This document shows positions 5,392 to 64,000 of a stretch of DNA of 64,000 bases, piece by piece. The notes under the pieces were generated by a model, which had not been told where the DNA came from, searched no databases, and saw nothing but the letters and a program-made list of their open reading frames with translations. Position numbers and translations under genes: made by a program. Source of the DNA: Paramoeba atlantica (lineage: Eukaryota > Protista > Discosea); contig CDRNVI010000083.1 in the NCBI GenBank assembly GCA_977017575.1, positions 186,001 to 250,000 on the forward strand, written 5' to 3'. The first letter of the stretch is position 1. Every line of letters starts with the position of its first letter.

Positions 5392-5732
5392 AAAAAGAAA
5401 TTATCTTAATTCTAAAATAACTTGCAGACCTCACTACTGCAACTGCAAACACGTAGGACGAGCGGTAATACAACCCCGTTCATCAAAAATGGGACTAACC
5501 TTTAGAGAGCTACGCGTCTTGTTTTTTGATAATTTTTTTCAGGCTTCCTCACATTACTACAGAGAAGACCGCAAAAATTGTGTCGAAAGGCGCAAAAGAC
5601 TAATATTTTAATTATTTGTATTTTATCCTCTTTTTTGTGCATTTAATGTGACTTTTGGAGTTTTCGTAAGAATTATTGAGAAAATTTAACCAGTTTTTAA
5701 CATTACTCCCGATCTTTTTCCTTTAACGACAT

Positions 5733-6383
5733 ATGAATTCTAGCGATAGCGAAGAGCTGTCGAGCGGGGTCACTCTTTCGGATGAAAATGATTCTGATTG
5801 GAACCCATCAGATGAAATGGAATCAGATTTCTCTGAATCACAAGAATCGTCTTCTTTTTCGTCGAATGGTTCGTGTGCTTCTCTAGGATATGATTCGCCG
5901 CACGACGACGTACGTGTATTGTCTAGTTTATCCAGCTACTCAACTTCCAGTGGCTCGGAATCTTCGTATTCTTCTTCTTCGGAATCTTCGTATTCTTCTT
6001 CGGAATCTTCGTATTCTTCTGCTAGCGAAAGTAACGTTTCCTCCCCTCTCCCACTTTCCCCTCTCTTACTTTCTCCTGCACGCCGTGTTTGCTCTTCGAC
6101 CCGCTCTCGCATTCCATCTTTTTCACCAGACCGTTTTCAAAGAAGTGGATCGTTGTCTCCAGGATTTGATGCCAAGCTGTTGGAAGCGATACGTGATATT
6201 AAGGACGTTCACTCCGATATATCCCACCCAGCTGTTGACAACACCTTCTCTAATAGTTTACCCCCTGAAATGGAAGAACCAGATTCCAAACAACCAACCA
6301 ATCAGTTAATTCCAGATCCAAGAGATGATCAATTAAAATCTTTGGAGAAAAAAAATCTTATGATATTTTTAGACCATTGCTAA
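5733..6383 (+). other. Ser/Asp-rich low-complexity ORF at the edge of a repeat island, possibly transposon-derived
   Basis: Opposite strand to the host genes. Contains three tandem copies of TCGGAATCTTCGTATTCTTCT; no recognisable domain. Confidence 0.25.
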
Positions 6384-7827
6384 AAATTATACTCAGAAAA
6401 GTTCATTTTTTAAAGGGAATTTTGACTTTTCAGGGTACTTTTTAAGGTAATATTATATATTTGTTTTGTCTACAAGTATTTTTCCGGTGGTACCCTCAAC
6501 TAGATCTGCACGAATACACCGTTCTTTTGCCCTTTCTCTCATATACATGAATGTGGGGATAGTCCCAAAACCACTGGAACGGGGTTGTAGTAGTCTTTCA
6601 TAAGTAATTGAGGGGCTGCGGGTGGGGATTCGGTGCGGTCTCTGTGCGGTGTACCTACTTACAGTGGTTTCAATTGAACTTCCCCCCCGCGGAAGTTTTA
6701 GTTTTTTTGTCCGTTTTTCCTCATTTTTGTTGCGAATGAGAGATCTCGTTCCCCTAGTGAAGCGCTTTGGCACCTTTTTTCCACAGAGACCCCCTAGTGC
6801 TCGTATAGTGACCTGAAAAATAGTCAAAACAATATTTTTGATAAATACGAACCTTGGAAGGTAGTACAAAACCATGTACAAGGGTGTACAGAAATCTTGC
6901 CCCCCCCCCCCGCGGAAATTTGATTTTTTTTATCCGTTCGGGTAAAAACAAGATTTTAGAAAACTCATATTTTGAAACTTACGTGAGAAAATCCAGAAAA
7001 TGACGATCAGTACGTACTAATACGTGATTTAAGCTTTGTAGAATAGTACTCAGAATGTCCGTTGTCGCTTTTTAATACTATTCTGAGTCGTTTGAGGACT
7101 GAGCTAATTTGTCTTGTTTTCATAGTTCCACAAAATGAAAAAAATGTACGTGAGGGTGAAAATTTGCTAAAAATAATGTTTTTTATCCCATGAGATCTCT
7201 AAGGAGTCATTAAGAAGGAAATACAGCAAGACTATTCGCTATGAGAACGAGACCCATGAAACGCGATTAAAACGAGCCAAAATGCGAAGGAAATGATCTC
7301 ATAAAACATAAAAAAATACAAAAAAAGGGATGTGCTCCTGAAAAATACTATCAAAAAACCATGTTTTTTGGACCCAAGGGGTCCCAAGGGGTCGCTATGA
7401 AAAAAAGGCGGCAAAGCGCTTCGCTGGAAAGCGAGATCTCTCCAATGCTGCAAAGATGAGCAAAAACGGATAAAAAAATCAAAATTCCGAGGGGGGGGGG
7501 GCAAGATTTCTGTTCACCCCTGTATTTTGGACCCAGGGGGTATCTACAAAAAAAAGCAGCAAAGCGCCACCAGGGAAACGAGATCTCTCCAATGCTGCGA
7601 AAATGAGAAAAAAACTCAAAATTACGCGGGGGGAAGATATCTTGAAACCACTGTATCTCAGTGCAAGTACAGTAAATTACTGTGCGAAGTGTAGAATGGG
7701 CGGGGTGGCAGGGACGTAGAAGGTGAAGGCGAGGCTTCATGAATCCTGACTTCGTTGGAGAACAAATCTCAATGAAATTTACGGTTAGTAACAAATCACG
7801 AATGATTTTTCTTGAGATTATTATTAT

Positions 7828-8300
7828 CATTGCGGTGGCTGTGTAACTACCGCTCTACCCTCGATTATTGAAAAAAAAGTAATCAAAAACAATGAAAATA
7901 TAAAAAAGAACATCCCGAAAGGAAAACTTTTGGGATGACCCAAAAATAAATTATTTTTGACCAAAAAAACGTAAAACTACTATTTTTCCACAATCGATTA
8001 CTATTACGTATTTTGGGAGTTTGGGACCTCAGTTACCATTCTACGACGTTTGTTTCGACAGATTCGCCTCCTACCCCTACTGGTATAAAAAACGACCCGA
8101 ATTTGGGGTAAAATTTCGCAATTTTCCCCTAAAAAAGTTGTTCATTCATGGTGGTTTGGTAATTTTTCTTTTTTAGTGCGTTCGTTAAGCGCTGAGGTAG
8201 TTTTCAACGCGAAGCGCGCAGCATGAATGAATTCTACGTTGAAAACAACCACCGCGTTTGACGAAGAACCTAAAAAATCATTGCGGTGGTTGTATAACTA
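7828..8300 (+). repeat. Hairpin-bounded dispersed element (HINE/Helentron-like), one copy plus head of a second
   Basis: Starts CATTGCGGTGGCTGTGTAACTACCGC, ends in a long palindrome ...GTTGAAAACAACCACCGCGTTTGACGAAGAACCT-A6, followed directly by another head at 8279. Confidence 0.75.
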
Positions 8301-9656
8301 CTGCCCCCCCCACTTAAACGCAACCAGGTTTTGGCCTAAAATTGCGCATAAGTAGCCAGGTCAAAAAAAGGGGTGAAAAACTTTTTCGCGCCGATTCGCG
8401 GCGCGTGTTTCTATCATGAATTATATACGCAGGGTACCCTTCCGTGCTGCTTTTTATATACATGAGGCGCTGCGGGTGTGCATCACCGAACCGGCACCTT
8501 TTCGTCGAACCTTTTGAGGTCGAACGAGGTCTATTTTAGCCCAAAAAATGGATTGTACACGTACAAAGTAGCTTAAAGTGTAGTTTTTTTAGTTTGTTAC
8601 CGTACATAGCCGCCTTACTGTGAAAATACGGTGTACGCTGTATACGGTGCTGTATACGAACGGTGTATGCATTACACAAATCAAATGTACAATTAATATA
8701 CCCTCCACAATACATGCATAATTCTTTTACATTATCCTCCTTTTTATATGATGAGCCCTGTTGAGAGCAACGAAGATTTCACTTCACGTATGAAGGTAAC
8801 ATCTGCGAGGGATGATGACGTATACGACGTCATTGTCGCATCGCTTATGCGCACCTTCACGAAGCGCAAAACTCCTTTCGCAAAACTCCTTTATCGCGCA
8901 CGATGGACAGCTACTTACATGCCACACGCTCTGTGTGTGGCGTGGAGGTTAGCTCCCAAGTGCTGCAGCGTGTCATCTTCCACCTTGTGGAGCGCCGAGG
9001 ACACCTTCTCTTGGATTGTCTGCCACGAGGGGTCTACTTCCTTGCAGAGGCGACGCGTGATCTGGAAGCTTTCTTGGAACAGAACCCTCTCTACGCCCCT
9101 CCTCATGAAGGAGCTGTGGGGGAGTTCGTGGAGAACGTGTGGCGTTCTGTTTCAGAAAAGCGTTCCAGATCATGTACTCTGTGGCGCAAACGGAAGAGTG
9201 GCTAGGGTAAAGAAAACGTAGCAGAGGAATCCCTTTCTTCTACGGTGATCTCTTCACCCAACTTGCGCACTCAACCTTCCTCGCTCCCTCAACCTTCGCT
9301 TGGGGAAGCCTCTTTGAGGCCACGTTCCTCTCGCGTGATGCGCTTTCCTTCCCTTTAGTTTTCCCTCGCAGAAGCGAACGTTTCCCCCACAAAGCGTACG
9401 TAAGAGAAAAAGAGTTGTAATTCAAGAGAAGTGATAAGCTCGTTTTTTTTGAAGTTTGAAGTGCTAACCTTTATATATCATTTTTTTTAGATATCATGCA
9501 TATTGTATCATGAATAAGTTAGGTATCTTACCCATGAATGTCATCTTATATGTATCATGAATAAGTTAGGTATCTTACCCATGAATGTCATCTTACTTTT
9601 TGTTTTCTCTCTAGGCGATATTTTATCCTGCAATTCTATTTATCCTGCATTCTATC

Positions 9657-10273
9657 ATGTACGGCATTACCAGACAGCAATTCACAGATTTTTTTCTTGA
9701 GCTACAGAGAGCAAGTCCTCTTGTCGCCACGGACACTGATCTCAGACGCCTTAGCTCTTCCTTAGCTACGTGCGCTTTGAACTGCACATGGGAGAAACTG
9801 TATGATTTACAGCCCATGTGGATTGCTCCCGAAACTCCTCCTCTATCCATCAGGACTCTCCGCGATGACTTTAGCCGCATCGCTGATCTTTGCCGCTCTC
9901 CTGCTTTAATGAATCCGAAACTTCGTTTCAAGCATGGGGTATCTTGGATGCCTGACGTGACATGTATGATGGACGTCACGACAATGCGACAATTACACTT
10001 GCCGGAGTCCCTATTTTTTTTCGCGGACCCGTTCCGGGCAGTGTACATGATGCGAAAATTTATAAAGAAAGAACCACGCACGGAACATTTCTTTTTGACC
10101 ATCATGAAGATGAAATATTTTTGGCGGATCTAGGATACGTGGGTTGCAACCACTGTTTTGTTCCATTCAAGGCACCACGCAAAGGTTGCCTTGATGAACA
10201 CCAGGATCGGTTCAACCGCATGCATTCTTGGATTCGTTCAAGAATCGAGCGTTGTTTTGCTCATTTCGATTGA
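9657..10273 (+). pseudogene. PIF/Harbinger (IS5-like, DDE_Tnp_4) transposase, internally deleted and frameshifted
   Basis: CMMDVTT (D1) in one frame; GPVPGSVHD, FLADLGY (D2) and RSRIERCFA (E) in the next frame. The segment normally between D1 and GSxHD is missing. Confidence 0.8.
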
Positions 10274-11796: not shown

Positions 11797-11883
11797 CCCT
11801 TATAACGCATATTGTAACCTGATAACGCATATTGTACCCTTTATAATGCATATTGTAACCTTTATAATGCATATTGTAACCTT
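11797..11883. repeat. About 20-21-bp minisatellite (core ATAA[CT]GCATATTGTAACC), 4 copies
   Basis: Direct reading. Related arrays at 12280-12412, 12805-12885 (reverse) and 52830-52920. Confidence 0.85.
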
Positions 11884-12280
11884 TATTGCGGTGGTTGTAA
11901 AACTACCGCTCTACACTCAATTATTGAAAAAAAAGTGAACAAAAACAGTGAAAATATAAAGAAGAACACAGTAATATAATAGAAGAAAAAAATATTAAAG
12001 GGGGCTCCGGTGGTCCAAAACTGAAAAAAAAAAATTGAAAAAAATGGGGGGTCCATGGGGGGGGGTCCAGGGGGTGGTCCAGGGGGGGGTCATGGTCGAG
12101 CAATTTTTTTCGAAAAAATTAGTTTTCGAAAAAAAAACGCAGAAAGGGTAGCCGGGGTCTTGGCGAGCATTTTCCACCCCCCTACTTTCGCTTTTCCGCC
12201 CCCCTACAACGCGAAGCGCGCAGCATGAGTGACTTCTAAGTTGAAAACAACCACCGCGTTTAACGAAGAGCTTAAAAAAT
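11884..12280 (+). repeat. Hairpin-bounded dispersed element (HINE-like), internally deleted copy
   Basis: Head TATTGCGGTGGTTGTAAAACTACCGC, GGGGGGTCCA repeats, right half of the terminal palindrome. Confidence 0.8.
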
Positions 12281-13953
12281 AATGCATATTGTCCCACTGA
12301 TAATGCATAAAACTCACACCCTTATAATGCATAGAAACTCGCACCCTTATAATGCATATTGTAACCTGATAACGCATAATGTAACCTAATAACGCATAAT
12401 GTAACCTGATTGCAAAAATATGGTGGAAATGCTGGGCTTCGTAAATTGCTTGGGTGTGGTGGAAAAGTTGGGCTTCGCAAATTGCTTCCCACTAACGTCA
12501 GACTCAGTGGCCCGGCCGGCCCCTCCGTGCGTTCGGCCTCTCATATTCCCCAAAACAACTACCACCTTCCCCCCACTCATCAGGGGTCGCTCGCGCGACC
12601 CCCGCTAAATAGGGGGGAAGGTGGTAGTTGTGGGGTATGGAGGCCTCTCGCAACTCCGGGGCCTCACCGGGAGCAGGAATGAAATACTAGCGCTCTTTAA
12701 CTTATTTCTCCTCTCCACTTTTTTTTTCTTTTTAACTTATTTCTCCCCTCCACTTTTTTTGTGGGGTCGTTTTTTCGAGGGGGTGGGCCACTTTTTTTTA
12801 AGGGCTCGCAAAAAACATGCATTATAAGGGTGCGAGTTTTATGCGTTATAAGGGTGCGAGTTTTATGCGTTATAAAGGTGCGAGTGGCCTCCCACGAGCC
12901 GCTCAATCAATTGCGGGCAATAAATGTGAACGGGGGTGTATGCATGCGAATGCATGCATAGATAGAATGGCCTATCTATGCATGCGAAGGGCAAAAGTAA
13001 ACATTACTCCGTCCTTGTAGAAGAGAGAACCCCACATCTAGGCGGCGCGCTGGTGCACTGATCATTTCGAAAGCGTACAGTACGTAGCAGGAGAGTTTCT
13101 CTGATGTACAGTATGCAAAGACTCGCCGTACAGATCGGTGGATGTCAGTGTGGATCAGAGTTCTCTAGAGATCGATGAAGATAATTCTCGAACGCCCCAA
13201 AGGGACTACCTGCAGATTCTCCATTTCAACAGCGGCGAAAATCTGTACAAAAATTCGTCCCAAAAAAAATCCTGCCCATACGAGGGAGGGCCACCCCCGG
13301 GTATGGGGGTGGAAAATACGCGCCAAGGCCCCGGCTACCCCTTCTGAGGGTTTTTTTGGTACCGCCGCGGTGTACGGGGATAGCTGGGAGGGGGGTTCAA
13401 GGGGGTAGGGACAAAAAAAAGTTTTTTTTTCGAAAAATAATATTTTTCAAAAAACATTTCGTGCGGTATGCCCCCCTGGACACCCCCCCCTAGACCCCTC
13501 ATTAGACCGCCCATTTTTTATTCAGTTTTTAATCAGTGATCGAGAAGTCACGGAAAAATACAACAATCATAGTTTCGCGCAACTTGAGGCCTACCCACTT
13601 GCGTAAACGGTCATAAGTGGGTGAAGAAGAGCTAGCATACTTGTCTTCAAGGAACACAGTGTGGTCAGGTGGAAGATCCATAAAAGGATTTGTAAGGTTA
13701 AAGTAAATTTTGGAACTATTTTTTTAGGATACATTTTGACTACATTTCATCAAAATTTCACTTCACTAAAAGTAACGGGAACGTGTACCTCTCAAAATTC
13801 AGAACTGGTAAGAGGGTATATAAAATTGTTCAACTCCTGAATATCTAGGAGTGATCTTTTTCGGGGCACTGTATTTTTACTTTGAGCCGCACCCGACCGC
13901 ACCCGGACGCACCCGCTCGCACCGAGCCCGGTTCACCCCTCTTAATTTAAAAG

Positions 13954-17279: not shown

Positions 17280-18215
17280 TTTAAAAACGAACTCGTGCGA
17301 GGCGGAGTGGAACAGAATCAGGGACCCGATACCCCGTACTCTGCACGACAATCGCTTCTTCTCCATTCAAGTAATCTCTCCGCAACCACACTTCCTCTCT
17401 TCATGCCCACAGAATCTCGTGTTTGTCCCGTGGACGGATGCACTTGAAGTACAACGTCCCATGGAGCGCAGTGGCAGGCCTTCTACAATCACGTCGCCCT
17501 CCGACACGGTGACGCGGGAACAGTGGTGGGATGAACAAGGTCACTGCCTCTGCAGGTCATGTAGAAAAAATTACGTATGTGGAAAAAAAATGTTTCAAAG
17601 CAGGTCTCACACCTTGAAACGTGCAAATTCCGAAATCACGCCTCTCCTCACCCCACTGACCCCTCCCAGTCGCCAGCACTTAAATGTGCAGCACTTAAAC
17701 TGCGAGCGCAAGCCATCATTCGCGGCACACAATACGGCGTCGCGATTCCTGCAGGGTCGGAACGGCTCAGACTTTAGAGTCTATCTGGCTTGGTGAATAT
17801 TCCGTTCCACGGATTTTGACACATCCCAATAACTCAGCGCACGGGTTCTGGGATAACGATGTCCTTACAATCGTGGACACCGTTCCTGTTTACCCTCACG
17901 ACACTCGCGAACATGATTATGGTAGTCATTTTTGAATCGGCAATGCAATTGAAACGTGCAACCCTATGTAGTGCACACAAAGTGTATTTTTTGTTTAAGG
18001 GCGTCTGTGAGAATATCCGCATGTTCATGTGGACAGTTTGGCGGGCAACGAGCCAAATTGAAATGTCCAGACAAAGACTTCGCCGTCATCTTGTGCCGCT
18101 CGTTCCGCTTTGATCGCTTTGGGTCCGGGACCACTATCTCACCTTCAGAGCTTGATTCAGATGAAGAGAGCGGTTCGGGCGCCCTGATTGTCGATGATCT
18201 TCGTTTGGACATGTA
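17280..18215 (-). pseudogene. Degenerate Cys/His-rich reading frame downstream of a HINE-like palindrome
   Basis: ATG near 18215: MSKRRSS...CPPNCPH...VCTT*GCTFQLHCRFKNDYHNHVREC..., with several in-frame stops; family not recognised. Confidence 0.25.
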
Positions 18216-19081
18216 ATTTCCTTTTTTAGGCTTTTCGTTAAACGCAGTGGTTGTTTTCAACTTAGAAGTCACTCATGCTGCGCGCTTCGCGTTGAAAACT
18301 ACCACCGCGTTTAACGAAGAGCCTAAAAAAGGAAAATTAGCCAGGGACGCTGAAGAAAACGGAAGGATTTGAGCCAAAAATAGCCGATTTTTAGGTAAGA
18401 ATGGGGTGCTTTTTGGGTATTTTTGCTCTCAGAGCACTGCATCCGACATTTACGCGTGGGAAATCACTCATAGGCATGTATTCGAGGTTACATAACATAT
18501 TGGGTAGAGAATGCGACTCCAACCACACTATTCTTTCGACACAAAAAGGCCCCTTGGGATCCGAAAAATACTTTTTCACCTTTTTTAGTCAAAAATGGGT
18601 CATTTTGGTAGGCGTACCATGGCTTCAAGAAGCGACATCTCGCGAAAACAATGGCGTGGAAAGCTAGAATAGGTCCCAAACTATCAAACTATCAAAATAC
18701 AATAGGGGAAACAATTTTGTAAAAATACTTTTTTTACCATTTTTTTCGTCAAGTTGAAAAGTTTTTCAAAAAAAAATTCCGAAAAAATCCGAACTTGTCG
18801 GACCCATCCTGCGCATACGAGGGGGGGGTCACCCCCTGGTAGGGGGGTGGAAAATTATTTTTTCGAAAAATATTTTTTTCAAAAAAAATTCGTGCGGTAT
18901 GCACCCCCCCTGGACCCCCCAAGGGCCCAATTTTTTTAGAAATTTTTTGGACTACCGGAGCCCCTTTTATATATTTTTCTTCTATTATATTACTGTGTTC
19001 CTTATTATATTTTCACTGTTTTTGTTCACTTTTTTTTCAATAGTCGAGGGTAGAGCGGTACTTATACAACAACCGCAATAA
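18215..19081 (-). repeat. Hairpin-bounded dispersed element (HINE-like), longest copy (about 0.86 kb)
   Basis: Reverse complement of 58984-59828. Complete palindrome of about 130 bp at about 18215-18345. Confidence 0.85.
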
Positions 19082-19801: not shown

Positions 19802-20443
19802 GAGGGGTGACTCCTGCCCAGGCGCTCCTAGGCGCTCCCAGTAAACTTCTACGGAGATCCGACTTGGTGAAATGATGTTCGCAAAGAGGTCCGGAATCCT
19901 CAATGTCCCTTGGATGGAACATGCTGGGCTAACATGACAAAGAGTTAGAAAGGGAGACCGGCGTTGGGCTGTCGTCGGTGATGGGGCGTGTCGACTCCAG
20001 CCTTCCGAAGTAAGAAATTCCAGCTAGCTGCAGCCCGCCGGTTGGACAGTCTTAACGTTAGGTGTATTGCGGTGGTTGTTTAACTACCATTGTACCATCG
20101 ATTATTGAAAAAAAAAGTGAACAAATTTTCCATCCCCACGTGGGGTTGACCCCCCCCCCCTGGTATCCGCCAGATGGGTCCGCCGAGTTCGGAATTTTGA
20201 CGAAAAAAAGTTGAAAAACATCCTAGGCGGGATCCTAGGCGCTCCCACCCAGAGTCATCCCTCTAAGCACAATGTATTATTAACGTGTATTACATACCGA
20301 AACCCTCGTTTAAGCTCTGCAAAATAACAATTCCCGTAACATGATTTCTGCATTTTCAGATTGAAACAAAAAAATATTAAGAAACTAAAGAAGAAAATTT
20401 TGACGAAAGATATCCTAGGCGCTCCCACCCAGAGTCACCCCTC
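19802..20443. mobile_element. Tourist-like MITE (PIF/Harbinger-type ends)
   Basis: 12-bp TIR GAGGGGTGACTC / GAGTCACCCCTC with TAA on both sides; a second right-end copy at 20252-20263 is also followed by TAA; contains a HINE-like head at 20065. Confidence 0.7.
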
Positions 20444-31638: not shown

Positions 31639-31829
31639 AAAGATATGGAATATGGACAAAAAATTAGCACGAAGATATTAGACCATGAAGGAATAGAGAA
31701 GCTACAATATTATCATATAGGGGGATTCCAATAGAGGTTTGGCCATTTTGGTCCAAAACATACCTCTATTACTGGGGGGATATACGGTACAGCGATATTT
31801 CATGTTTCGGTATTATCGCGAAACAAATT

Positions 31830-38185: not shown

Positions 38186-38216
38186 GCTGTATATTCTTGT
38201 ATATTTTGACAAAAAC

Positions 38217-38430: not shown

Positions 38431-38433
38431 AAT

Positions 38434-39858: not shown

Positions 39859-39871
39859 TGTAGCCAGGAAA

Positions 39872-49137: not shown

Positions 49138-49294
49138 GGGAGAGGATGCGTTTAAAGAAGAGTATGGAAATTTGAGAGCAGAAATAAATTTTGTGTTTGG
49201 AAGGATATTCTCTTGTTCTGGTCGTACAAAAAAAAGAGATTCACTTGACAAGCCATCAGTAACGTAAATAAAAAATAAATAAGAAAAGAAAGCT

Positions 49295-50483: not shown

Positions 50484-53300
50484 AATGCGGCGGTTGTATA
50501 ACTACCGCTCTACCCTCGATTATTAAAAATACGTGAACAAAAACAGTGAAAATATAAAGGGGAACACAGTAATAAAATAATAGAAGATAAAAACAGGGTT
50601 CGCAGAAACTATAATATAGTAAAATATAGTTTTTTTCATTGAATATAGTTACTATATAGTACTATATTTACTATATTTTACTATAAAACTATAAGAAAAC
50701 TATAAAGTTTTTTTCACTTTACAAGTGATATTTTTTGAGTCCTCTCCGCTTGTGAAGGACACACACACGCCTCTACATGCGTTCTTACACGCTTGCATAC
50801 GTATGATATGACAAGAAATTCTGAAAAAAATGTAACCCAAGATAAAGTGGACGAGGGAGATACTAAAAGCACCTTTGGCAAACCACCATAAAAATGGAAG
50901 GGTATGTCCCTTAAAGATTCTTTTGGCACGTCGGAATCCTTTACAAACCGGGAGATATCATTCCATTTTTGTGGTGGTTTAAAGGTGCTTTTAGAACCTC
51001 CCTCGTCCACTTTATCCGGGGTTACATAGCTATCGAAACATCCTCCCTCTTCCCCGAGATTACATCACCGCCGAAAAATATCATCAACTAGTGTGTCATC
51101 TCCTCGGAAATAGCAATGAAACGCATGCGAAAGGAGTGACGATAGGAAGTACAAACTCTCCACTCGACAACACACCGCGTAATTTATTCAGACTCATATG
51201 ATTGTATTTATTCAAACTCATAGAATTGTGAGCAGCAGTTATTCAGTCCCAAGACATAACGTCGGTGGCTCCAGCCAACGCGCGGTGACAGCGATGCAGT
51301 GAGAAGATGTTCGGGACGCAAGATTCGCACAAGGCAATCTGTCAAGACCACGCGATTTCTTTATCATAAAAATATAAAAGGGGGCCCCGGTGGTCTAAAA
51401 TTGAACAAAATATTGAAAAAAATGGGGGGTTCAGGGGGGGGTCCAGGGGGGGCATACCACACGATTTTTTTAAAATTATTTTTTAATTAGTCCCGCAGAA
51501 GGGGTAGCCAGCGTCTTGGCGCGTATTTTCCACCCCCCTACCCGGGAATGTGGTAGGGAAGTGGTAGAGTATGCCGCGGCGATAATTTTTCACTCTCCCA
51601 CCTGGGGGTTCACCTCCCTGGTACGCGCAGGAGGGGTCCGACAAGTTCGAAAATTCCGAAATTTTTGGGCTGACCCTCCAAAAAAAATTGACCAGAAAAG
51701 GAAAAATATTATTTTTCCAAACTCTACTACTAAAACGTTTTTTAAGAGTTTGGGACCCCAGCTAACATTCTACGACGTTTTTTTCGATAGATTCGCCTCC
51801 TACCCCTACTGGTAAGGCATGAAAAACGGCCCAAATATGTGGTAAAATTTATCAATTTTCGCCAAGGACTCGAGCTTTTTCACCCAAAAAAATTGATTAT
51901 TATTCATAATGTTTTGGCAATTTTTCTTTTTTAGTGGCTTCCTTCTGCCAGGGACCCCTTTAACGAAGCCACTGAAAAAATATTGCAGTGGTTGTAAACT
52001 ACCGCTCTACCCGCTGGTTAATGCGGTGGTTGTATAACTACCGCTCTACGCTCGATTATTGCAAAATAAAAACAGTTAAAATATACAGAGGAACACAGTA
52101 CTAAACCCCCGTCCGGGTTAATATACCCCCCAGTACAATAACTAGCTATAGGTACAATACGTAGCTATAGGTACAATAAAAATTCCGAAAAATAACGAAA
52201 ATAGTGCAAAATGTCTTCGCTGGTAAAAATGGTAAAATTGTAATCAAATTTAAGAAGAAAATCAGTAAAAAGGCAAAAAAAATTGGCTCACTCTTTTGCG
52301 CAGGGGGGTACAATAAAACCAAGCGTTCCCACTTATTGTACCCCCCCCCCCCCGGTACAATAGCGAGCTACAGGTACATTAAACCGGAACGGGGTTTATA
52401 ATAAAGGAAAAAAATATAAAAGGGGGCTCCGGTGGCCCAATTTTGAAAAACTAAAAAAATGGGGGGTCTAGGGGGGGTCCATGGGGGGGGTATACGTCGC
52501 GACCCCCCATGGGTGTCCATGGGGGGGTCTATGGGGGGATCCAGGGGGGGGCATACCGCACGAAATAGGGAGCAAACATAGCTAAAAATCACCCCATTTT
52601 TACCCGAAAATCGACTATTTTTTGCTATAATCTTTCCGTTTTCTTCGGCTTTCCAGGCCAAATTTTCTTTTTTAGGCTCTTGGTTAAACGCGGTGGTAGT
52701 TTTCAACGCGAAGGGCGCAGCATGAGTGACTTCTAAGTTGAAAACAACCACCGCGTCTAACGAAGAGCCTAATTTACTACCGCTCTACCCTCGATTACTG
52801 AAAAAAAAGTGAACAAAAACAGTGAAGATGCGTCATGGTTACATTATGCATTTTAAGGATGCGAGTTTTATGCGTTATATTATAACGCATAAATAATATA
52901 ATTTTTTACCCCTTATAATATATGGGTGCTCGTGCCTACCGCTCTACCCTCGATTGTTGAAAAAAGGTGAACAAAAACAGTAAAAATATAAAGAGGAACA
53001 CAGTAATGTAATAGAAGAAAAAAATATCCAAGGGGGCCCCGGTGGTCCGAAACTGAAAAAAAATTGAAAAAAATGGGGGGTCCATTGGGGCGGGTCCGTG
53101 GGGGGGCGTCCATGGGGGGGTCCAGGGTGGGCATGCGTCGCGATTTTTTTCCGATTTTTTTGCTTTTCAAAATCGAGCGCCGGGAAGTGGTAGAGTATGC
53201 CGCGGCGATGGGTACGCGCAGGGGGGGGTCCGATAAGGTGAAATTTTCCGATTTTTTTTGGATGACCAAAACGTTTCTTTTTTTTGACCCAACACACAAC
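50484..53300 (+). repeat. Cluster of partial and tandem HINE-like copies
   Basis: Heads at about 50484, 51981, 52019, about 52776 (truncated) and about 52937 (truncated); full palindrome at about 52674-52772. Confidence 0.8.
52104..52396. mobile_element. TA-flanked MITE inserted in a HINE-like copy
   Basis: Ends AACCCCCGTCCGGGTTAAT / ATTAAACCGGAACGGGGTT, TA on both sides, internal TAGCTATAGGTACAATA repeats. Confidence 0.7.
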
Positions 53301-53399: not shown

Positions 53400-54354
53400 T
53401 GAAGCACCTTCCACAGCCCTGTCATCCATGTATCCTAGTTACTTTCCTTGGAAATGCCTCTTTAGGGCGAATGTGTCTTCCAGCAACTCGCCTTCATATT
53501 CATTTGACCTTCTGACCTGTTGGCTCTATACCTCTGTTTTTGCCTAGGGCACAGAGCGAGACGCGTTGTTAATTCAAAACCTTGTTTACGCAACCAGTGT
53601 ATATAAAAAGGGTATGTATATTTTGAAAAGAAAGAAAATAATAATGAGCCCATTCAAACACCTCCCTATGCATGAAAATTCAGTCCTCATTTGTTCAATC
53701 AGAACTCCTCGTAGATTTTTGTGTTGTACATTCCTCCTCACAATGTAATCGTTTAATTTGTGGAGTGCGCGTCGTAACTGTAGGTACGAAAACCTTGGTT
53801 TTACGTTGTACACGTTGTTTTTCATTATTCTGGAGCCTTTTTGGGCAAACTTTCTCATTGGATCTTGTTTGCTTGGCCTTTGATCGAGCACGTTTGTGCG
53901 TTTCTGATTTAGAATTTCTACTATTTGATTCCTTCGCGGATCTATTTATTGGTTGTACGGGGCTGGGGTTTATGTCTTTGGCCGTAACCTGTGGGAGCGC
54001 GAAAGCTGGCAAAGTGCGTTTTTGCAAAGTTTTAATTTTCTTATCAGTACTCAATGGAATGGGGTCTCTCCTTTTCGTGTGTGATTTATCATCAAAGCCA
54101 CGGTAACAGAAGGAGCAATTTTCTTCAACTTGTTGCGAGGCGCGTTTCGCAAGCCAATCCGATGTGGCATTGTGCGGATTACCTTCATGACCCCTGACTT
54201 TAATGCAGTAAATATTATGATTCTCCTCTATCTGAAAGCAAATCCGGGTTATTTTTGATAAAAGTTCCGAATTTTCGAATGACTGAAATCCGATTAAAGA
54301 AAACCTCTTCCGAATTACGTGAAAGAAGTCCCAGACACTGTTTTTTTGACCCAA
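53400..54354 (-). pseudogene. Retroelement-like relic with RNase H C-terminal motif (possibly ingi-clade)
   Basis: KVRGHEGNPHNATSDWLAKRA (54139-54201) matches RNase HI V.GH.G...N..AD.LAK.A; a downstream frame has EQMRTEFSC (LRTG-like). No RT seen. Confidence 0.5.
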
Positions 54355-57300
54355 AAAACAGTAAATATACTATTTTTCCAAAATCGACTCCTAAAGCGTA
54401 TTTTAGGAGTTTGGGAGCTCAGCTGTATGCTGAAGATTAAAAGAAATCATTTCGAAGGTGATAATTTCCTATTTTTGCATGAACATGATACTGTGATCCC
54501 CCTTTTATACTTTGTTTTTCGTGCGCCCCCCGAAGGGGGGACGATTTTATTTTTAATTTCGTAAATTTTCTAACCTTAGAAAAAGGAGCCTCTAAGTCTT
54601 CCCTTCTAGAAAGGGAAAGTGATATAAAAGGAAAGACGAGAACTGGATGAGCCGCGCCGAGAAATGGCGCGGCCTTTTTACAGCGGGGAAAAAAATTCGG
54701 ACCCTACCCTTTATACTTCGTTACTGCTCAAAATGGGCGAAGTATAAAGGAGGGGGGATCACAGCACCGCAAAAATTGAATGAAAAAAAATAAAAAAATA
54801 AAATTGGCGCTTCGAGGCAGGGTATATTCTCTTCAAAAGCAACGCTAATAGGGGGGGGGTACCGGGGCAACGCTAGGATAGGGGGGATAGTAAGTAGTAA
54901 TCCAGGGATGGGGGGAGATGGGGAATCATCTGGAGCGTTAACGTTTTCTGGAAGAGAGAGAGAGATGAAGGGAAGTTAACGGAAGGGTTACCATTTTCGA
55001 AAGGGGAAGAGATGAAAGGGATTGGCTGGGCTGGTTAGTAATCATACCTGCCCGCAATCGGCTCCTACTTCGGAGAACCATCAGTAAAAAATGAGTCAAA
55101 TATTGTGTAACAAGATGTAGCAAGGTGCTCGTAGGACGTATAGTACATTATACTAGAAAATGAAAAAATGAAAAAAAAATACGCCGCCGCTTCGCGGCGC
55201 CCCGTGTCCAAGGTTTTGTCAAAAAGGACAATTAAATAGGGGGGAGGGGTCGAGGGGTGACAATTAAGTAGCGGGGTACAGTAATTATAAATACGCCTCG
55301 AACTAGCACTTTTACTCCCTTGTGACTCATAATTCCTATGCCTTTCATAAGTAACTATAAATGCAACTTCGATCAATTCGATCGATAATTTTTTTGGCCT
55401 CGTATTTTTTTTGTTTTCTCTTTTTTGTTATTTCTATTTGTTTTCAGCGGCCTGTCACTACTTAATCCTTTTCAATGATGTCTCGAAAACGGTCATCGAG
55501 CGGGTCTTCCTCAATAGCCGACTTTTCCTCGGTTGGCGGTAGACCATCAAAAAGGTGGGTTGAGAAAAAGGTTCTCTTGTTTCACTCCATATTCGAAGTG
55601 AGTGAAAGTGACCGAGAGCACGCTCTGAATGAGATTCTGAAGTTCAATGAACTCATTTTTGAGCACGAATTCATTCTACGCCAAACACTTGTAGGAGCTC
55701 TAGAAACCCACTTTGGCAGTGATAGGCAATATACGGTCTGAATAATCACTAGAACGGGCTATTCTAGTAACCCGTATTTGTTTTGCATTGGGGACAATTA
55801 ATGCCAACGGGGTCCCAAGATTATGGAATCCTGTTACTGAGAGTCTTCCTTTTTCGATTCATATACTAGTAGTTTGGTGTGACGAAAAAAAACTCCAAGA
55901 GAATCGGAGGTAACTTACTCACTACCACTGGCCGAAGGCATTGGACCGCATCGAGGTTGCTGGGCGACCGATAAAGATCCGTTATACCCCCTCGAAAATG
56001 TGGCTGCAATGCAAGTATCGCATCCAGCACTCCGAAAGCGTACGTTTACTCGAGAGGCTTCTTACTCGAGACGAGTTCTTACACGCTTACATACAGGGGT
56101 GAAAACTTCCATCTGGGGGGGGTCTAAAATTTACAAAAAAAATTCAATTTCGGAAATTAATAGCGCATTGGAGAGCTCTCGCAGAGTTGTATGTCTTTGC
56201 ACTGGTAGCTTTTAATATATCAAATTAGAATTATAAATACCGAATATAATAATATTTTGGAATAATAAAAAACGCGGGGTATATAAGGTTAGTGACCAAG
56301 TGTTGGAGGACATAATGCCCGAAAACTGAGATCTGTAAAATGCCACTGAAATTACCTCAAACAAGCAAAAGTGACCCCCAAACAATAAGTACTCCACAAA
56401 CAATAAGTGACCCCCCCTTATTTTTAGCACAGGGGGCGTGGGTGGGTTATCATACCACTTTGTCGTTCAGAATTTCGAGATCTGCACGTTCCCGCTATTT
56501 CTAGCTCATTTTAAAATGTTAAAAAAATTACAAAAAAAGGAATTGTTTTTTTCGAAAAAATGCCTAAATCCGCATACCGACTGCCGAAAGGGGGGCTTAC
56601 GAATAGCGGGAAGGTTCTTTTGAGGATGAGAGACGGGCAAGGAGTCTCAAAAAAGCAATTGTCCCGCGATTTCAATGTTTCAGCTAAAATGGTAAGAAAA
56701 TATTTGAAAGAAAAAAAACCCACCCCACAGTACACAATGAGTCCCGAACGCAAAAAAAGTATTCAGTATCGAAGAGAAAAAATTAAGAAAGTTCTTGATC
56801 CTCTCGACCCCGCCGGTGTTCCAAAAGTGAATTCAGCTCGTCGAATAAAAGCAAAACTAAATAAAAGTGGCATAAAAGTGTCAAAAAATACGGTACTCAA
56901 TGATCTAGAGGCCATGGGATATAATTACGGCGCTCGGCCTTTGTGCCAAGGCCTCACGGAGCTACAAAAAATAAAAAGAGTACGATTTTCTCAAAATTGC
57001 AACATGGACACATCCAGTGTTGTGTTCACTGATGAAAAAATATTCGACACTAATGACAGTCGAAAAAATATGTGGGTAGCGCCCGGTCAAACAGCGGCCC
57101 CACGTCAAAAAGTACACTGGGCGCCGAAATGTCAAGTTTGGGGGGCTATAGGTGTAGGTTGGAGACACCTACACCCCTGGGCAGCTTCATTTACCCCCCC
57201 CCCCCCTACAGGTCTTGTATTTTGTTCGATTTCGGAAATATTTAGTATGGGACTGTTTTTCGCTCCGATCGTCTCGAATCCGCGGTCGTTTTCACTCGAG

Positions 57301-57665
57301 CGACCTTGATTTGCTCCGAGACCTTAAAATTTTTGTCCAAAAAGTCAATTTTTTTTGCCCACCCTAGAAAAATCTACTTTTTTTCTGTTTTTTCCTCAAT
57401 GGTCAAACGATATCGGGCTTCTTCCCTCCCGAATCAGCGTATTTCACCAGAAAGGCGAACTCTCATCATAGCACGCTACAAGGAACTAAAATCCCTACGT
57501 GCTGTAGCTAATGAGCTCAAAATCTCCAGGAATGGAGTAAGATATTGGGTGCGGCACTTTGAAAAGCACCAACACGTTTCCACCCCACCTCGCCAAAAAC
57601 GGCGTACGGTAGACTTCCGCAAACGACTTAAATTGGTGGTAGAAAAGAAAGGTTATCACATTGGT

Positions 57666-59828
57666 TATTGCGGTGGTTGTAAAACTACCGCTCTACCCTC
57701 GATTATTGCGGTGGTTGTAAAACTACCGCTCTACCCTCGATTATTGAAAAAAAAGTGAACAAAAACAGTGAAAATATAAAGAGGAACACAGTAATAAACC
57801 CCCGCTCACGAAAAGTGACCCCCCTCTTTTTTTTCGTACAAATGTCCGTTTGAGCTGATTTTTGTTGCATTTTGTAGATCTCAACACAAGGACTTTGCGC
57901 GTGAAGAAATGAGACAAAAAGAAACGAATACGCACAATTTAGAGAATAATTAACATTTTTTCACTTTTTCGCCCTTCAATCTTATACACTCCTTAGGTCG
58001 AGAATCAAAACTTAATACTGTTTTGTCGATCACTTTTTGAGTTAAAGAAGACCATGCTTTACGTACACATCGGATAAGTGAAGGCTTGTCCGATGGCGTT
58101 TGTTCGTCTACCGCCTCTTGGACCATAGACCAGACGTTTTCTATGGGGGAAAGGTCGGGCGAGTTGGGGGGCCAGTTTCTTAGAACATCACTCATTCGAT
58201 TCTCAATATACTCTTTGGAGGCACGGGCAGTATGTGCCGTTGCCCCATCCTGTTGAAATACACTATTAGGGGGGAAATCTACCTGTTTTGATGTTTCTAT
58301 GTACGTCTTACTTGTAATAGATGTGTCATTTGGTAGAATAACGAAATACCTCCACCCACAGGACTCAAAGTGTATTCCCCGCTAGATTTTTTTCGTTCAG
58401 ATATTTTTTGATTATCCTTCTAGAGACGTTAAAATCACGGGATAATTGTTTTATCGGAACACCTTCTCCATGTCTCATCTTCAAAAGAACCTTACCACTA
58501 TCCGTAAGCGCCCCTTTTGGAAACCGATATGGTGATTTGGTCATTTTTGGAAAAAAAAGTTGAAAAGCCAATTATTTTTTTTGACTAAATTTTAAAATTT
58601 TAAAATGAGCTAAAAACAGCGGGAACGTGCAGATCTCGAAATTTTGAACGAAACAGTGGTATGATAACCCACCCACGCCCCCATGTGCTAAAAATAAGGG
58701 GGGGTCACTTATTCGTGAGCGGGGGGTTATAATAGAAAAAAAAATATAAAAGGGGGCTCCGGTGGTCCAAAACTGAAAAAAAAAATTGAAAAAAATGGGG
58801 GGTCCAGGGGGGGGTCCAGGGGGGGGGTCCAGGGGGGGGCGCCCGCACATTGATAATGTATACTAAGCGGCACATTGATAATGCATATAGCACATTGATA
58901 ATGTATACTAAGCGGCACATTGATAGTGCATATAGCACATTGATAATGCATATAGCACATTGATAATGCATATAGCACATTGATATTGCGGTAGTTGTAA
59001 AACTACCGCTCTACACTCGATTATTGAAAAAAAGTGAACAAAAACAGTGAAAATATAAAGGGGAACACAGTAATATAATAGAAGAAAAAAATATAAAAGG
59101 GGGCTCCGGTGGTCCAAAACTGAAAAAAAAAATTGAAAAAAATGGGGGGTCCATGGGGGGGGTCCAGGGGGGGGGCATGGTCGAGCAAATTTTTTCGAAA
59201 AAATTAGTTTTCGAAAAAAAACCGCAGAAAGGGTAGCCGGGGTCTTGGCGCGCATTTTCCACCCCCCTACCCGGGGGTGACCCCCCCGCGTATCCGCAGG
59301 ACGGGTCCGCCAAGTTCTGATTTTTTCGGAAAAAATTTTTTGAAAAAAATTTCAACTTGGCGAAAAAAATGACAAAAAAAATATTTTTCCAAAATCGTTT
59401 CCCCTATTGTATTTTGATAGTTTGGGACCTACACTAGCTTTCTACGCAGTTGTTTTCGCAAGGTATCACTTCTTCGAACTGTGGTGCGCCCCCCAAAATG
59501 ACCCATTTTTGACTAAAAAAGGTGAAAAAGTATTTTTCGGACCTAAAGGGGCATTTTTGTGTCGAAAGAATGGTATGGTTGGAGTCGCATTCTCTACCCA
59601 ATACGTTCGGTAGGCTTTCATTCATGCCTACGAGTGATTTCCCACGCGCAAATGTCGGATTTAGTGCTCTGAGAGCAAATGTACGCGAAAATCACCCCAT
59701 TTTTACCCGAATTTCGGCTATTTTTGGCTATAATCTTTCCGTTTTCCAGGCTAAATTTTCTTTTTTAGGCTCTTCGTTAAACGCGGCGGTAGTTTTCAAC
59801 GCGAAGCACGCAGCATGAGTGACTTCTA
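57666..59828 (+). repeat. Tandem HINE-like copies with a 20/25-bp minisatellite (58845-58983)
   Basis: 38-bp head duplicated (57666, 57704); second copy 58984-59828; GCACATTGATAATG-based array between the copies. Confidence 0.85.
57797..58727 (-). mobile_element. Internally deleted Tc1/IS630-like family A copy
   Basis: TIR A[AC]CCCCCGCTCACGAA.AAGTGACCCC with TA TSD; N-terminal MTKSPYRFPKG.. and C-terminal QQDGATAH..WPPNSPDLSPIE fragments. Confidence 0.85.
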
Positions 59829-60826
59829 ATAATAATATACACCATCAAAAATTGTCTAGTCATTTTAGTAAAAAAATATTGTTTCAATCATGAAAAGGAC
59901 CGCGGATTCGAGACGATCGGAGCGAAAAACAGTCCCATACCAAATATTTCCGAAATCGAACAAAATGCAAGACCTGTAGGGGGGGGGTAAATGAAGCTGC
60001 CCAGGGGTGTAGTTGTTCTGGATAAGGACTAGTCGATCACGAGCATATCTTATGTAAAGACGTTGAAGAAAGTACAATTTACACAGAATTGTATCTTTCA
60101 ACAAGATGGGGCTACAGCACACACTGCCCGTGCCTCTATGGAGTACATTACGGGTAGAATAAATGATGTACTTAAAAATTGGCCCCCCAATTCACCTGAC
60201 CTTTCCCCCATAGAAAACGTTTGGTCCATGGTCCAGGATGCGGTGGACGAAAAGACTCCATCGGATAAACCTTCACTTATCCGATGTATACGCAAAGCGT
60301 GGTCTCGTTTGCCACAAAAGGTGATCGATAAAACTTTTTTGAGTTTTGATGCTCGCCTTAAGAAGTGTATAGAACTCAAAGGCGAAAAAGTGACAAAATG
60401 GTAATTGTAATCTAGAAACGCTAGTTGATCTTTGTTTCAGCCCACTCTTAGGTGCACAAAGTTCCTATGGTGAGATCTTCAAAATGCAACAAAAATGAGC
60501 TCAAACGGCCACTTGGCCAAAAAAAAAGTGGGGGGTGACTTTTCGTTGGGCGGGCTTTATAAAAAATGAATAACTACGGGAAACGACCTTTCCACCAGAG
60601 GGATTTGCGAGAGCTCTCAAATGAGCTATTATTTTCCAAAATTGGCGAAGATATACGAATTTGGATCCCCTGAGATTTAGCTGCACCCCCCTGTAAGTGG
60701 GGGGGGTATATTACATGTAAAAAAATGGCTAGCACGTGACGATCCATGACGATTCGTGGCACCCAAGACTTGCAGTCTAACCCTATCACTATGAAGCCTA
60801 TTTTGAAACCACTTTCATCCAAATTA

Positions 60827-61345: not shown

Positions 61346-61420
61346 AATATTTATCTAGTAAAAATTACCGAGTTTAATATGAAAAACCTACTTAAAGTAA
61401 ACACTAAAACTTTTGCTGTA

Positions 61421-61734
61421 CCCCCCCCCGTTTATAATAGCCTCGCTTTTGCCCAAATAAACCTATAAAGGGGGGGGGCGATTAAAGGTTGGCACAGAAA
61501 TCGCCCTACATTTGGGAGCGAGGAACCAATAATTACCCAATCGCTAAGTGGGCCCCGGCACTCTGGCAAAGTAAAATGACCAACACGACTCCGCGCCATA
61601 CCTCGAAGAACCATGTGAAAATATCAAAATATTTAAGACGGCGCAAGAAAATTAAAAAAAACATTTGCTCGGTTTGCCCAAAAAAAGAACCTATAAAGGG
61701 GGGGAGGGGTCGAGGCTATTATAAACAGGGGGGG
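61421..61734. mobile_element. TA-flanked MITE (Stowaway-like)
   Basis: TA|C9-GTTTATAATAGCCTCG ... CGAGGCTATTATAAACA-G7|TA, with internal AACCTATAAAGGGGGGG repeats. Confidence 0.7.
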
Positions 61735-61961
61735 TACAGTATATATTTTATTACTGTACCCCCCTACTTAGGGGGTTGAAACCTTCCCAGGCTTCCCTCA
61801 ATACTTTGAAACACTATATAGAAACTATATAAAAACTATATTTTTTTACTATTTTTCTGAGTAGCTTTTTTCTGAAAGTATTGTTTGAAATGCCGACTCG
61901 ACGCAATTTCTTTTTATCACTCACGTTTTCTTGAAAGATTTCTCACTATTTTTCTCATCAT

Positions 61962-62535
61962 ATGCCCAACAAACGTCGCAACGACGAGAGTCAGGCCGGG
62001 TTTGTAGCTACTCACTTTCTTGAAGTCGATAAGGAAGCTCACATATTTGAATGTCAGAAGTGCTCTGGTCCAGACAAAAGGCGTTTTGCTTGCGAAAAGG
62101 GCATCCGAGTTTCGTACGCAGCTGCTTTGACACATCTCATTAAAAATCATAGCTTGACGTACGTATGAAGAGTGGCTTCATACAACACAGCAACGGAAGC
62201 GGTCTGAGCAAGGCACCCTGGTAGCATTCACTGTGCGGCCACAGCTCCAGGAATTTGAACGGCTTCTTCTTTGGAAGTGTGATCACGGTATTCCTAACGC
62301 TGCTATTCAGGATCCGAATTTCAAATCGATAGTAACGAAAGGGCTTCGTTGCGTTCCAGGGGAAAATACCATAAATGATTTGACCTTGGACCTAAAGGAC
62401 AAGTGTCGCTCCGAAATTTGTTCACATCTTCGCGGTCGATTTGTCAGCCTCGCAGTCGACTCCGGAGCGATACATCGAAGAACAACCTCTGCAGTATGCG
62501 TTCTGTCAGAAGGCCCTGGAATGCAGTTGAGATGA
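61962..62535 (+). pseudogene. hAT transposase N-terminal relic with BED-type zinc finger
   Basis: CQKC...HLIKNH, then after a 4-bp frameshift HGIPNAAIQDPNF and FVSLAVDSG (first catalytic D). Confidence 0.7.
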
Positions 62536-62773
62536 ATGATGGGTGCACATCCGAGGCGTATAAGAGGGCTGAAACTAGAGATTTACGATCCCGGCCGATC
62601 CCACCGGTCCTGGTTGAATTTATATGGAAGAAAAGACTTGGTGAAAACGCGAGTTCTAGAAATTCAACGAAAGAAATAGCGACCACTTTTTTTACAGAAA
62701 CTCATTCAATTGTTAAAAATCAAAAACAATGTTAACATGAAGGTAGGAGAAACTAAACAAACATTTACTATTA

Positions 62774-62977
62774 AACCCAGATTGAAAGGGGCGAGGGAGA
62801 TACGAAGCAACAGGCGTGGCAGATTCCCACTGAAAAGAAATGGTATCTCCCCGCACGAGAAAAGCCTTTGTGCTTTCTAGCTCGGAGACAAACTTCGTGC
62901 GGGAGATACCATTTCTTTTCAGTGGGAATCTGCCACGCCTGTTGCTTCGTATCTCCCTCGCCCCTTTCAATCTGGGT
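62774..62977. repeat. Foldback element, about 84-bp arms and about 36-nt loop
   Basis: 62774-62858 is the reverse complement of 62895-62978 except for one C indel; TA on both sides. Confidence 0.9.
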
Positions 62978-62982
62978 TATAC

Positions 62983-63542
62983 GGCGGGCCGTTCGAGGCG
63001 GTGCAGACCCGCTGGCGCGGGGAGTGCTTTACCTCGTGACAAGTAATCTTGAAGGAAACAAGCTTCTGAAATCTTTTTTTTGAGGGGCCCGCCCGGCGGG
63101 CCCTTCGAGGCGGTGCAGACCCGCTGGCGCGGGGAGTGCTTTACCTCGTGACAAGTAATCTTGAAGGAAACAAGCTTCTGAAATCTTTTTTTTGAAGGGC
63201 CCGCCCGGCGGGCCGTTCGAGGCGGTGCAGACCCGCTGGCGCGGGGAGTGCTTTACCTCGTGACAAGTAATCTTGAAGGAAACAAGCTTCTGAAATCTTT
63301 TTTTTGAAGGGCCCGCCCGGCGGGCCCTTCGAGGCGGTGCAGACCCGCTGGCGCGGGGAGTGCTTTACCTCGTGACAAGTAATCTTGAAGGAAACAAGCT
63401 TCTGAAATCTTTTTTTTGAAGGGCCCGCCCGGCGGGACCTTCGAGGCGGTGCAGACCCGCTGGCGCGGGGAGTGCTTTACCTCGTGACAAGTAATCTTGA
63501 AGGAAACAAGCTTCTGAAATCTTTTTTTTGAGGGGCCCGCCC
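62983..63542. repeat. Tandem array, 5 x 112 bp, with palindromic junctions and a T8 run
   Basis: Unit starts at 62983, 63095, 63207, 63319 and 63431; near-identical units. Confidence 0.95.
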
Positions 63543-64000
63543 GGCTAACATTTTGCCTCTGGGAGGTCTATGTTCGAGTCTACTTACGTCTTGTTTATGT
63601 TAAGCATTGAGCCCTTTATGTTGTACTTTAATAATGCAAAAGTGCACCTATGGGCACGTTCACTGGCTCAGTGAGACGGAACCGAGGTTCCCCCAACACT
63701 TACACCAGGTCGTGCATACGGAACATTTCGTTCGTTGACAGTTCTTTATGTATCTCTGCTTGGTTAGCCAACAGGCATTAAGCTCAGACGCCACGTCAAG
63801 GCGAGAGATAATTGTCTGAGGACCCTCTTCTCACGAAGAAGGTATTCAAAATGAATGTGATTTTCGTATCAATTTACTCTAATTTTTTTTCTATTTTCCA
63901 CTGTACATTTCTTGTTCCACTGTATTTCTTGTTCTTCGCTCTTTTGCCCATACCGCTTCTACCGATTCCCGGCTGACGATCTGAGCAAGTTCCGTACGAG

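Follow-up and report, generated by a model that had tools for sequence, protein, structure and literature searches.

Class II transposons of several superfamilies in the spacers of a prokinetoplastid gene array

The stretch analysed here comprises 64,000 nucleotides of a contig deposited under Paramoeba atlantica (CDRNVI010000083.1, positions 186,001 to 250,000; GenBank assembly GCA_977017575.1) and is referred to below, at its full length, as the window. It carries a single array of host genes (positions 164-50401, minus strand), as delineated by the list of open reading frames (ORFs), by Pfam and by homologues and a tree of MTR4. The minus strand encodes every one of the long conserved ORFs, none of which shows visible introns. 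Pfam identifies, among their products, a 5'-3' exonuclease, leucine-rich repeat (LRR) proteins, CAF1, NMT, an MFS transporter, DnaJ, TIP41, an EF-hand protein, CNNM, an EMG1-like protein, an HBS1/eRF3-like GTPase, MTR4, RPS4 and TatD. Host ORFs account for 40% of the window and non-ORF sequence for the remaining 60%; the G+C content reaches 53-61% in coding stretches and is approximately 40-42% in the spacers. We consider it probable (roughly 0.85) that the spacers within and upstream of this same-strand array, which belongs to a prokinetoplastid, are packed with class II (DDE cut-and-paste) transposons and with non-autonomous elements derived from them, many of them nested in one another.

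Four superfamilies, namely IS30, Merlin, Tc1 and PIF/Harbinger, are firmly established in these spacers, while two more, pogo and hAT, are probable. A preliminary description of the window, made from its letters alone, had listed IS30, two Tc1/IS630-like families, pogo-like, PIF/Harbinger, Merlin and hAT relics together with miniature inverted-repeat transposable elements (MITEs). Alignment-based tools bear out the IS30, both Tc1/IS630-like families, PIF/Harbinger, Merlin and MITE-like elements from this list, whereas the pogo and hAT assignments can be carried forward as probable only. For comparison we employed other contigs, coded L001 to L006, among them L002 (ctg3887l), L003 (ctg4010l) and L004 of the ENA assembly ERZ24900291.

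The IS30-type element is complete, measures 1425 bp and occupies positions 20893-22317 on the minus strand, as defined by the NCBIfam IS30 model, its copies, its target site duplications (TSDs) and a joint in the reads. Its intact transposase ORF (21206-22153, minus strand; 315 amino acids) matches the NCBIfam IS30 equivalog NF033563 over profile positions 1-267 of 267, with a score of 245.3 bits (cut-off 80), and is composed of an HTH_38 domain (E 1e-13) followed by an rve domain, the latter scoring just below the Pfam cut-off (30.6 against 32.6 bits). The termini form imperfect terminal inverted repeats (TIRs) of ~27 bp, the repeat at the 20893 end being present as two tandem copies, and the element is flanked by the TSD AG at 20891-2 and 22318-9. 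It is nested inside another repeat. Further copies occur in the same genome: that in L001 is 99.86% identical over exactly 1425 bp, encodes the same protein and lies between unrelated flanks with the TSD GA, that in L005 is 97.97% identical with the TSD CC, and L006 holds a more distant IS30-like ORF with 58% amino acid identity.

This part of the window was also compared with reads from four public runs (X1-X4, as Logan contigs, over the stretch 20001-26000). Read contigs in three of the runs join position 20889 to 22317, thereby skipping 1427 bp, which corresponds to the 1425-bp element plus its 2-bp TSD; these contigs are copies of the surrounding repeat without the IS30 insertion. Several other read joints near 20467-20473 have sides of less than 30 nt and were not interpreted. 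The unique NMT region displays a flat word depth (57.9 in X1), while the stretch 20001-23800 is repetitive, its depth being 5-190 times that of the unique NMT gene, and 7-190 times over the transposons in the four runs (depths here are sums over Logan contigs, not copy numbers). The highest value, ~190 times the NMT gene in X1 and similarly high in X2-X4, was recorded at 22401-22600, a region that includes a hairpin at 22417-22461, and suggests a very high-copy short repeat beside the IS30 insertion.

As a rival explanation, the transposon islands might stem from misassembly or contamination, in which prey, host-amoeba or bacterial sequence has been joined to kinetoplastid genes; IS30 elements are typically bacterial. 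The runs do look mixed, with contigs in the hundreds of thousands, and the short-read contigs break at each repeat, such that none crosses the whole stretch 20001-26000. However, one X1 contig links the repeat edge to NMT, and ctg3887l is collinear with the window from 57200 to 34707 at 99.78% identity over 22.5 kb (36 mismatches, 12 gaps), and in it the same kinetoplastid genes are separated by the same insertions. It shares with the window both the Merlin and the repeat island upstream of TatD (50.4-57.2 kb), and is probably the other haplotype (a haplotig); across these 22.5 kb the two haplotype-like contigs differ by 0.22%. Furthermore, IS30 possesses exact 2-bp TSDs at three loci, it is nested in a eukaryotic repeat whose empty form is present in the reads, and its identity to IS30 elements from elsewhere does not exceed 49%. 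We regard an artefact as very unlikely, and misassembled islands, which the preliminary description had named as a finding that would undo its proposal, are contradicted by the collinear contig, with Merlin and the islands included.

The best relatives of the IS30 transposase outside this genome derive from plasmids and short metagenomic contigs and are 40-49% identical. Since even the best matches are this distant, a bacterial origin, while plausible, would be remote, being either not recent or from a donor that has not been sampled. The suggestion that elements of the window came from bacteria is thus plausible for IS30 only, and as a distant event (best non-self relatives 45-49% identical).

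A complete Merlin (IS1595-type) element of 1441 bp lies at 38426-39866 on the plus strand and is recognized from its TIRs, a flanking direct repeat, an intact allele in L002 and a copy in L003. The TIRs (38426-38453 and 39839-39866) are 28 bp long and match at 25 of 28 positions. The ORF (38527-39603, plus strand) is interrupted in the window by a TGA at 39175-39177, where L002 has TGG and encodes an intact protein of 358 amino acids bearing the motifs AVDETFF, YTDGW and NHAES. This intact allele scores 36.1 bits against DDE_Tnp_IS1595 (cut-off 27), compared with 19.1 bits for the C-terminal piece of the window alone. As the two haplotype-like contigs differ at this codon, a nonsense allele appears to be segregating. 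When its N-terminal piece was used as the query of an exhaustive HMMER search, 64 relatives were returned, and the IS1595 domain was found in eight of the nine that were checked; one relative from an ENA contig (P0127, 776 amino acids) has the IS1595/Merlin domain fused to Ulp1 (Peptidase_C48). A paralogue on ctg4010l is 94.9% identical over 1321 bp, and because its homology stops exactly at 39866 it confirms the right end of the element. A further paralogue shows 54% protein identity.

Conserved Merlin ORFs are known from Bodo and Perkinsela, where they lack TIRs and TSDs, lie antisense to gene clusters and are suspected to be domesticated (PMC8101967). By analogy, the transposase ORFs of the window might be domesticated host genes that are no longer mobile, and the Merlin ORF described here is indeed also antisense to the array and intact in one haplotype. 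Against such a view stand its 28-bp TIRs and flanking direct repeat, the 94.9% identical paralogue that ends at exactly the same terminus, the segregating nonsense allele, and the TSDs and empty sites of the IS30 and TA-inserting elements. Domestication is therefore very unlikely in our estimation. An 83-bp direct repeat (38290-38372 and 40848-40930, 88% identical) brackets Merlin and an LRR ORF, with one copy overlapping the 3' end of the EMG1-like ORF; it may represent a segmental duplication or a fragment from the end of a gene.

Upstream of the array, positions 56145-60644 hold a nest of Tc1-related elements. The whole nest is enclosed by a MITE-like element with 39-bp TIRs (56145-56183 and 60606-60644), of which TIR-like copies are found in L003; a TSD was sought for this outer element and none was resolved. 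Within it lies a Tc1-type (DD35E) element on the plus strand (56384-60562), identified through the Pfam domains HTH_Tnp_Tc3_2 and DDE_3 and NCBIfam IS630, which is split in two: 56384-57171 comprises HTH_Tnp_Tc3_2 and the first catalytic D, and 60010-60562 the rest of DDE_3 with the second D and the E. The HTH match of this region spans 56515-57306. DDE_3 is matched at 57953-58381 (minus strand) and 60033-60401 (plus strand), with E values of 2e-10 and 7e-9, and the catalytic spacing is 35 residues in both copies.

The sequence separating the two halves of the split Tc1 is itself a mobile element. L004 holds an uninterrupted Tc1 paralogue that is 93-97% identical to the split copy and reads GACACC-TA-GTTGTT at the position where the window reads GACACC-TA-[2838 bp]-TA-GTTGTT. 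Because this paralogous empty site has a single TA, positions 57172-60009 represent a mobile element with a TA TSD, and this second Tc1/IS630-like element (2838 bp, plus strand, non-autonomous) is furthermore delimited by TIRs of ~120 bp that are 94-97% identical. Its ORF (57306-57758) encodes only an HTH (HTH_23, HTH_28 and HTH_SB, all weak matches), and nested within it are MITE-like or abundant-repeat copies as well as another Tc1 derivative. The latter (57794-58730, minus strand) is an internally deleted relative of 937 bp with 47-bp TIRs and ~79% identity to the split Tc1. The ends of the Tc1 copies are compatible with TA. When relic pieces were compared with the other fetched loci by tblastn, the only matches were HTH matches for element 57172-60009. 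The domains detected in L003 are DDE_3, DDE_Tnp_4, IS1595 and HTH_23, and in L004 DDE_3.

PIF/Harbinger is represented by a frameshifted transposase relic at 9600-10270 (plus strand), recognized by DDE_Tnp_4. The domain itself is matched at 9956-10270 with E 3.6e-12 and 46.6 bits (cut-off 24.8), and the part upstream of 9956 is in another reading frame. The neighbouring ORF pieces, in which a second, Myb-like ORF might be expected, gave no Pfam match. A second ORF with DDE_Tnp_4 occurs in L003.

A further TA-inserting element, of 708 bp, lies at 22738-23445 on the minus strand. It is bounded by TIRs of 45-67 bp and a TA TSD at 22736-7 and 23446-7, and contigs in all four runs join 22735 to 23446, skipping 710 bp, which represents the empty form of the element. 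In an Atlas language-model search its ORF piece retrieved HTH_Tnp_Tc5, HTH_psq, CENP-B_N and Tigger clusters at 0.88-0.93 (0.92-0.93 for the first three), and it has no match in Pfam, NCBIfam or the PDB (phmmer). None of the window ORF pieces scanned with Pfam contains DDE_1, and 708 bp is too short to encode that domain. It is a non-autonomous, TA-inserting element, probably derived from pogo, and not a proven member of that group.

The 5' relic of a probable hAT transposase is located at 61935-62732 on the plus strand. Its first part (61935-62165) exhibits, by eye, a BED-like motif of the form CxxC...HxxxxH, and is followed by an RNase-H-like N-terminal piece. The clusters retrieved by the Atlas search were ZBED1_RNase-like, DUF659, DBD_Tnp_Hermes and zf-BED, with scores of 0.83-0.94; the ten best matches all belong to one clan. 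Neither Pfam, phmmer against the PDB nor a word-seeded homologue search gave a match. Pfam finds no Dimer_Tnp_hAT domain or catalytic core and no ORF continues past 63545; from 62774 a palindrome and a tandem array take the place of the 3' part of the relic. The palindrome (62774-62978) has perfect 78-nt arms and termini resembling those of a foldback element at 50830-51027, and the array that directly follows it (the two together spanning 62774-63545) consists of five 112-bp units that are 98-99% identical. AlphaFold2 single-sequence models of the hAT piece (predicted local distance difference test, pLDDT, 40) and of the pogo piece (pLDDT 33) were unusable.

To which organism this array belongs was addressed with MTR4. 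The MTR4 ORF has one ENA protein that is 100% identical, and its identity is 67-71% to EukProt PhM_4 and PhF_6, 56% to Perkinsela sp. CCAP 1560/4, 54-56% to trypanosomatids and Bodo, and 48-50% to Diplonema and Euglena. PhM-4 and PhF-6 are clones of the free-living prokinetoplastids Papus ankaliazontas and Apiculatamorpha spiralis (PMC7859406). In a maximum-likelihood tree of 26 taxa (LG+C20 PMSF) the host falls within Kinetoplastea (100/100) and within Prokinetoplastina (100/100), where it pairs with an ENA protein, the two together forming the sister group of the Perkinsela clade (97/95). The branch of the host is short and the stem of Perkinsela long. RPS4 and NMT, compared with PDB chains only, point to a euglenozoan-like eukaryote without finer placement, and an exact-protein look-up with NMT gave no record. 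A diplonemid host, prompted by the best PDB match of RPS4 being from Euglena, was ruled out by the MTR4 tree. On this phylogenetic evidence the window appears to be nuclear DNA of a prokinetoplastid that is sister to the Perkinsela clade and is not Perkinsela itself.

The condition set by the preliminary description that the host be a kinetoplastid holds, as the two fully supported nodes of the MTR4 tree demonstrate. In case the host were a Perkinsela-like endosymbiont of an amoeba, that description had further proposed that transposons spread during or after genome reduction. The sister-group position of the host and one ENA protein would suit this proposal. Nevertheless, the MTR4 protein is only 56% identical to that of Perkinsela and closer to those of the free-living PhM-4 and PhF-6 (67-71%), the branch of the host is short where the Perkinsela stem is long, and the spacers are multiple kilobases in length, with 60% of the window being non-ORF. 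The host is therefore not Perkinsela itself, and endosymbiosis with genome reduction finds no support in intergenic spacers of such length, nor is there any for an amoeba as donor of the elements; we consider this scenario unlikely.

Besides these elements, the spacers hold several repeats of less certain nature. An abundant, unclassified interspersed family, defined by self-BLAST and end alignments, has a full-length copy at 18213-19080, one end of which starts ATTGCGGTGGTTGT, while the other carries a hairpin of ~110 bp and ends CTAAAAAA. Other copies, whole or fragmentary, are located at 7823-8278, 11883-12280, 13270-13530, 50484-53122 and 58984-59829, and the family occurs in more than ten places overall; two of the copies adjoin a ATAATGCATATTGTAACCTTT-like minisatellite. 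No clear TSD was found for this family, which we do not class as a MITE. Neither an Rfam nor a tRNA scan gave a match, and the hairpin-ended repeat is not visibly derived from a tRNA. Self-BLAST also delimits a stretch at 12300-12885 in which a ~25-bp unit is arrayed over ~60 bp at both ends in inverted orientation (92% identical); the stretch represents a MITE-like element or else an inverted minisatellite. A MITE-like element of 346 bp with ~40-bp TIRs and a possible TA flank is located at 61405-61750, and repeat comparison reveals short TIR or foldback elements at 50830-51027 (also in L001), 62774-62978 and 6682-7497. Pfam analysis of 30 further spacer ORF pieces gave no match. The sole hint of a retroelement is an RNase H piece at 53698-54369 (minus strand), which has the C-terminal part of that domain, with E 7e-5 (below threshold), and a lysine-rich tail; Pfam finds no reverse transcriptase beside it, and the piece could be either a pseudogene or the relic of a retroelement.

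When merged, the demonstrated repeats and elements amount to at least 19.4 kb, corresponding to 30% of the whole window, or to 51% if only its non-ORF space is considered. The preliminary estimate that elements occupy roughly half the window is thus too high for what can be demonstrated, this figure of 30% being a lower bound.

Some features of the host genes deserve brief mention. The MFS transporter region (25985-28348) has a G+C content of ~61%, in contrast to ~40-42% in the 2-kb bins that contain the LRR and WD40 (DCAF4-like) ORFs (30790-34641). An Atlas search relates a host ORF of 624 amino acids to WD40/DCAF4-like proteins and yields no taxonomic signal. Finally, the RPS4 ORF (48343-49326) has ~63 surplus N-terminal codons ahead of the conserved start, and because, with this extension, it shares 32 bp with the end of the TatD ORF (49295-50401), the true start of RPS4 is probably an internal Met.

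Several points weigh against a spacer region filled with class II elements of a prokinetoplastid. The placement of the host derives from one protein, MTR4. The haplotype-like contig ctg3887l, although a separately assembled copy, comes from the same ENA assembly and is not independent data, and the word depths, being sums over Logan contigs, do not represent copy numbers. The pogo and hAT assignments are based on language-model matches and motifs, without E-value-based support. With regard to boundaries, TIRs and TSDs were sought for the Harbinger relic with no convincing result, and the hAT relic has none. The direct repeat at the ends of Merlin is GGAAAT, exact over 6 bp; the usual TSD of Merlin elements is 8 bp, and an 8-bp reading matches at seven of eight positions only when the left boundary is moved by 2 bp.

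The families may have arrived or expanded in several waves. The Harbinger piece would be an old relic, since no TIRs were found for it, and the hAT relic would likewise be old; Merlin and Tc1, with 87-97% identity between copies, would be intermediate, and IS30, at 98-99.9%, very recent. The spacers of polycistronic units may have served as tolerated landing sites, and the non-autonomous copies would depend on full-length partners at other genomic sites for their mobilisation in trans. A bolder proposal is that a diverse class II mobilome has been retained in this deep-branching kinetoplastid and is active to this day, including a bacterial-type IS30 element that transposes in the nucleus (an undescribed 'IS30EU'-type lineage) and the first TIR-bounded, apparently autonomous Merlin of a kinetoplastid. 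We hold this proposal to have slightly less than an even chance of being correct.

To our knowledge, kinetoplastid genomes are textbook eukaryotes without class II elements. The literature searched agrees with the preliminary description on both of its background statements: no DNA transposons are present in 57 trypanosomatids (PMC12278014), and for kinetoplastids as a whole only Merlin, in Bodo and Perkinsela, is on record (PMC8101967). A survey of prokinetoplastid genomes does not mention transposons (PMC7859406), and no later papers on prokinetoplastid transposons were found in that literature. The elements of the window would imply that DNA transposons persisted, or re-invaded, after the origin of kinetoplastids. 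If the mobilome is indeed still active, the lack of DNA transposons in trypanosomatids would be a later loss and not an ancestral trait of kinetoplastids. Polycistronic gene arrays, moreover, would tolerate multi-kilobase transposon islands, and IS30, Merlin and Tc1 transposases that already work in a kinetoplastid-type nucleus would be a possible source of genetic tools.

With bacterial IS30, the element of the window shares the full-length equivalog match, the HTH_38 and rve domains, a single ORF, ~27-bp TIRs, a 2-bp TSD and a size of 1.4 kb; it differs in residing in a eukaryotic nuclear contig between kinetoplastid genes, in having been amplified there, and in being only 40-49% identical to bacterial and metagenomic relatives. 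A 2023 compilation of links that connect insertion sequences with eukaryotic transposons (PMC10045372) does not include IS30, whose presence here would add a new one. The published Merlin ORFs of Bodo and Perkinsela (PMC8101967) have in common with ours the DDE_Tnp_IS1595 domain, a kinetoplastid host, an orientation antisense to the array and a similar protein size (358 amino acids here). Unlike those ORFs, which lack TIRs and TSDs, the Merlin of the window is bounded by TIRs of 28 bp and flanked by a direct repeat, is accompanied by two or more paralogues (94% and 54% amino acid identity) and has a nonsense allele that appears to segregate. The Tc1 family, assigned by its domains and catalytic spacing, corresponds to the DD35E-type Tc1 elements of the Tc1/mariner (ITm) group, such as Traveler (PMC7093834), and differs in its host lineage. 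The spacers as a whole resemble those of the diplonemid Diplonema papillatum (PMC10161547), another euglenozoan whose unidirectional gene clusters are separated by repeats that include DNA-transposon ORFs; however, D. papillatum carries MULE and Helitron elements, whereas the window belongs to a kinetoplastid with IS30, Merlin, Tc1, Harbinger and probably hAT, and its islands, unlike those of D. papillatum, lie inside a same-strand array. The kinds of element are known, while the host lineage, the intact IS30 and the TIR-bounded Merlin are unexpected.

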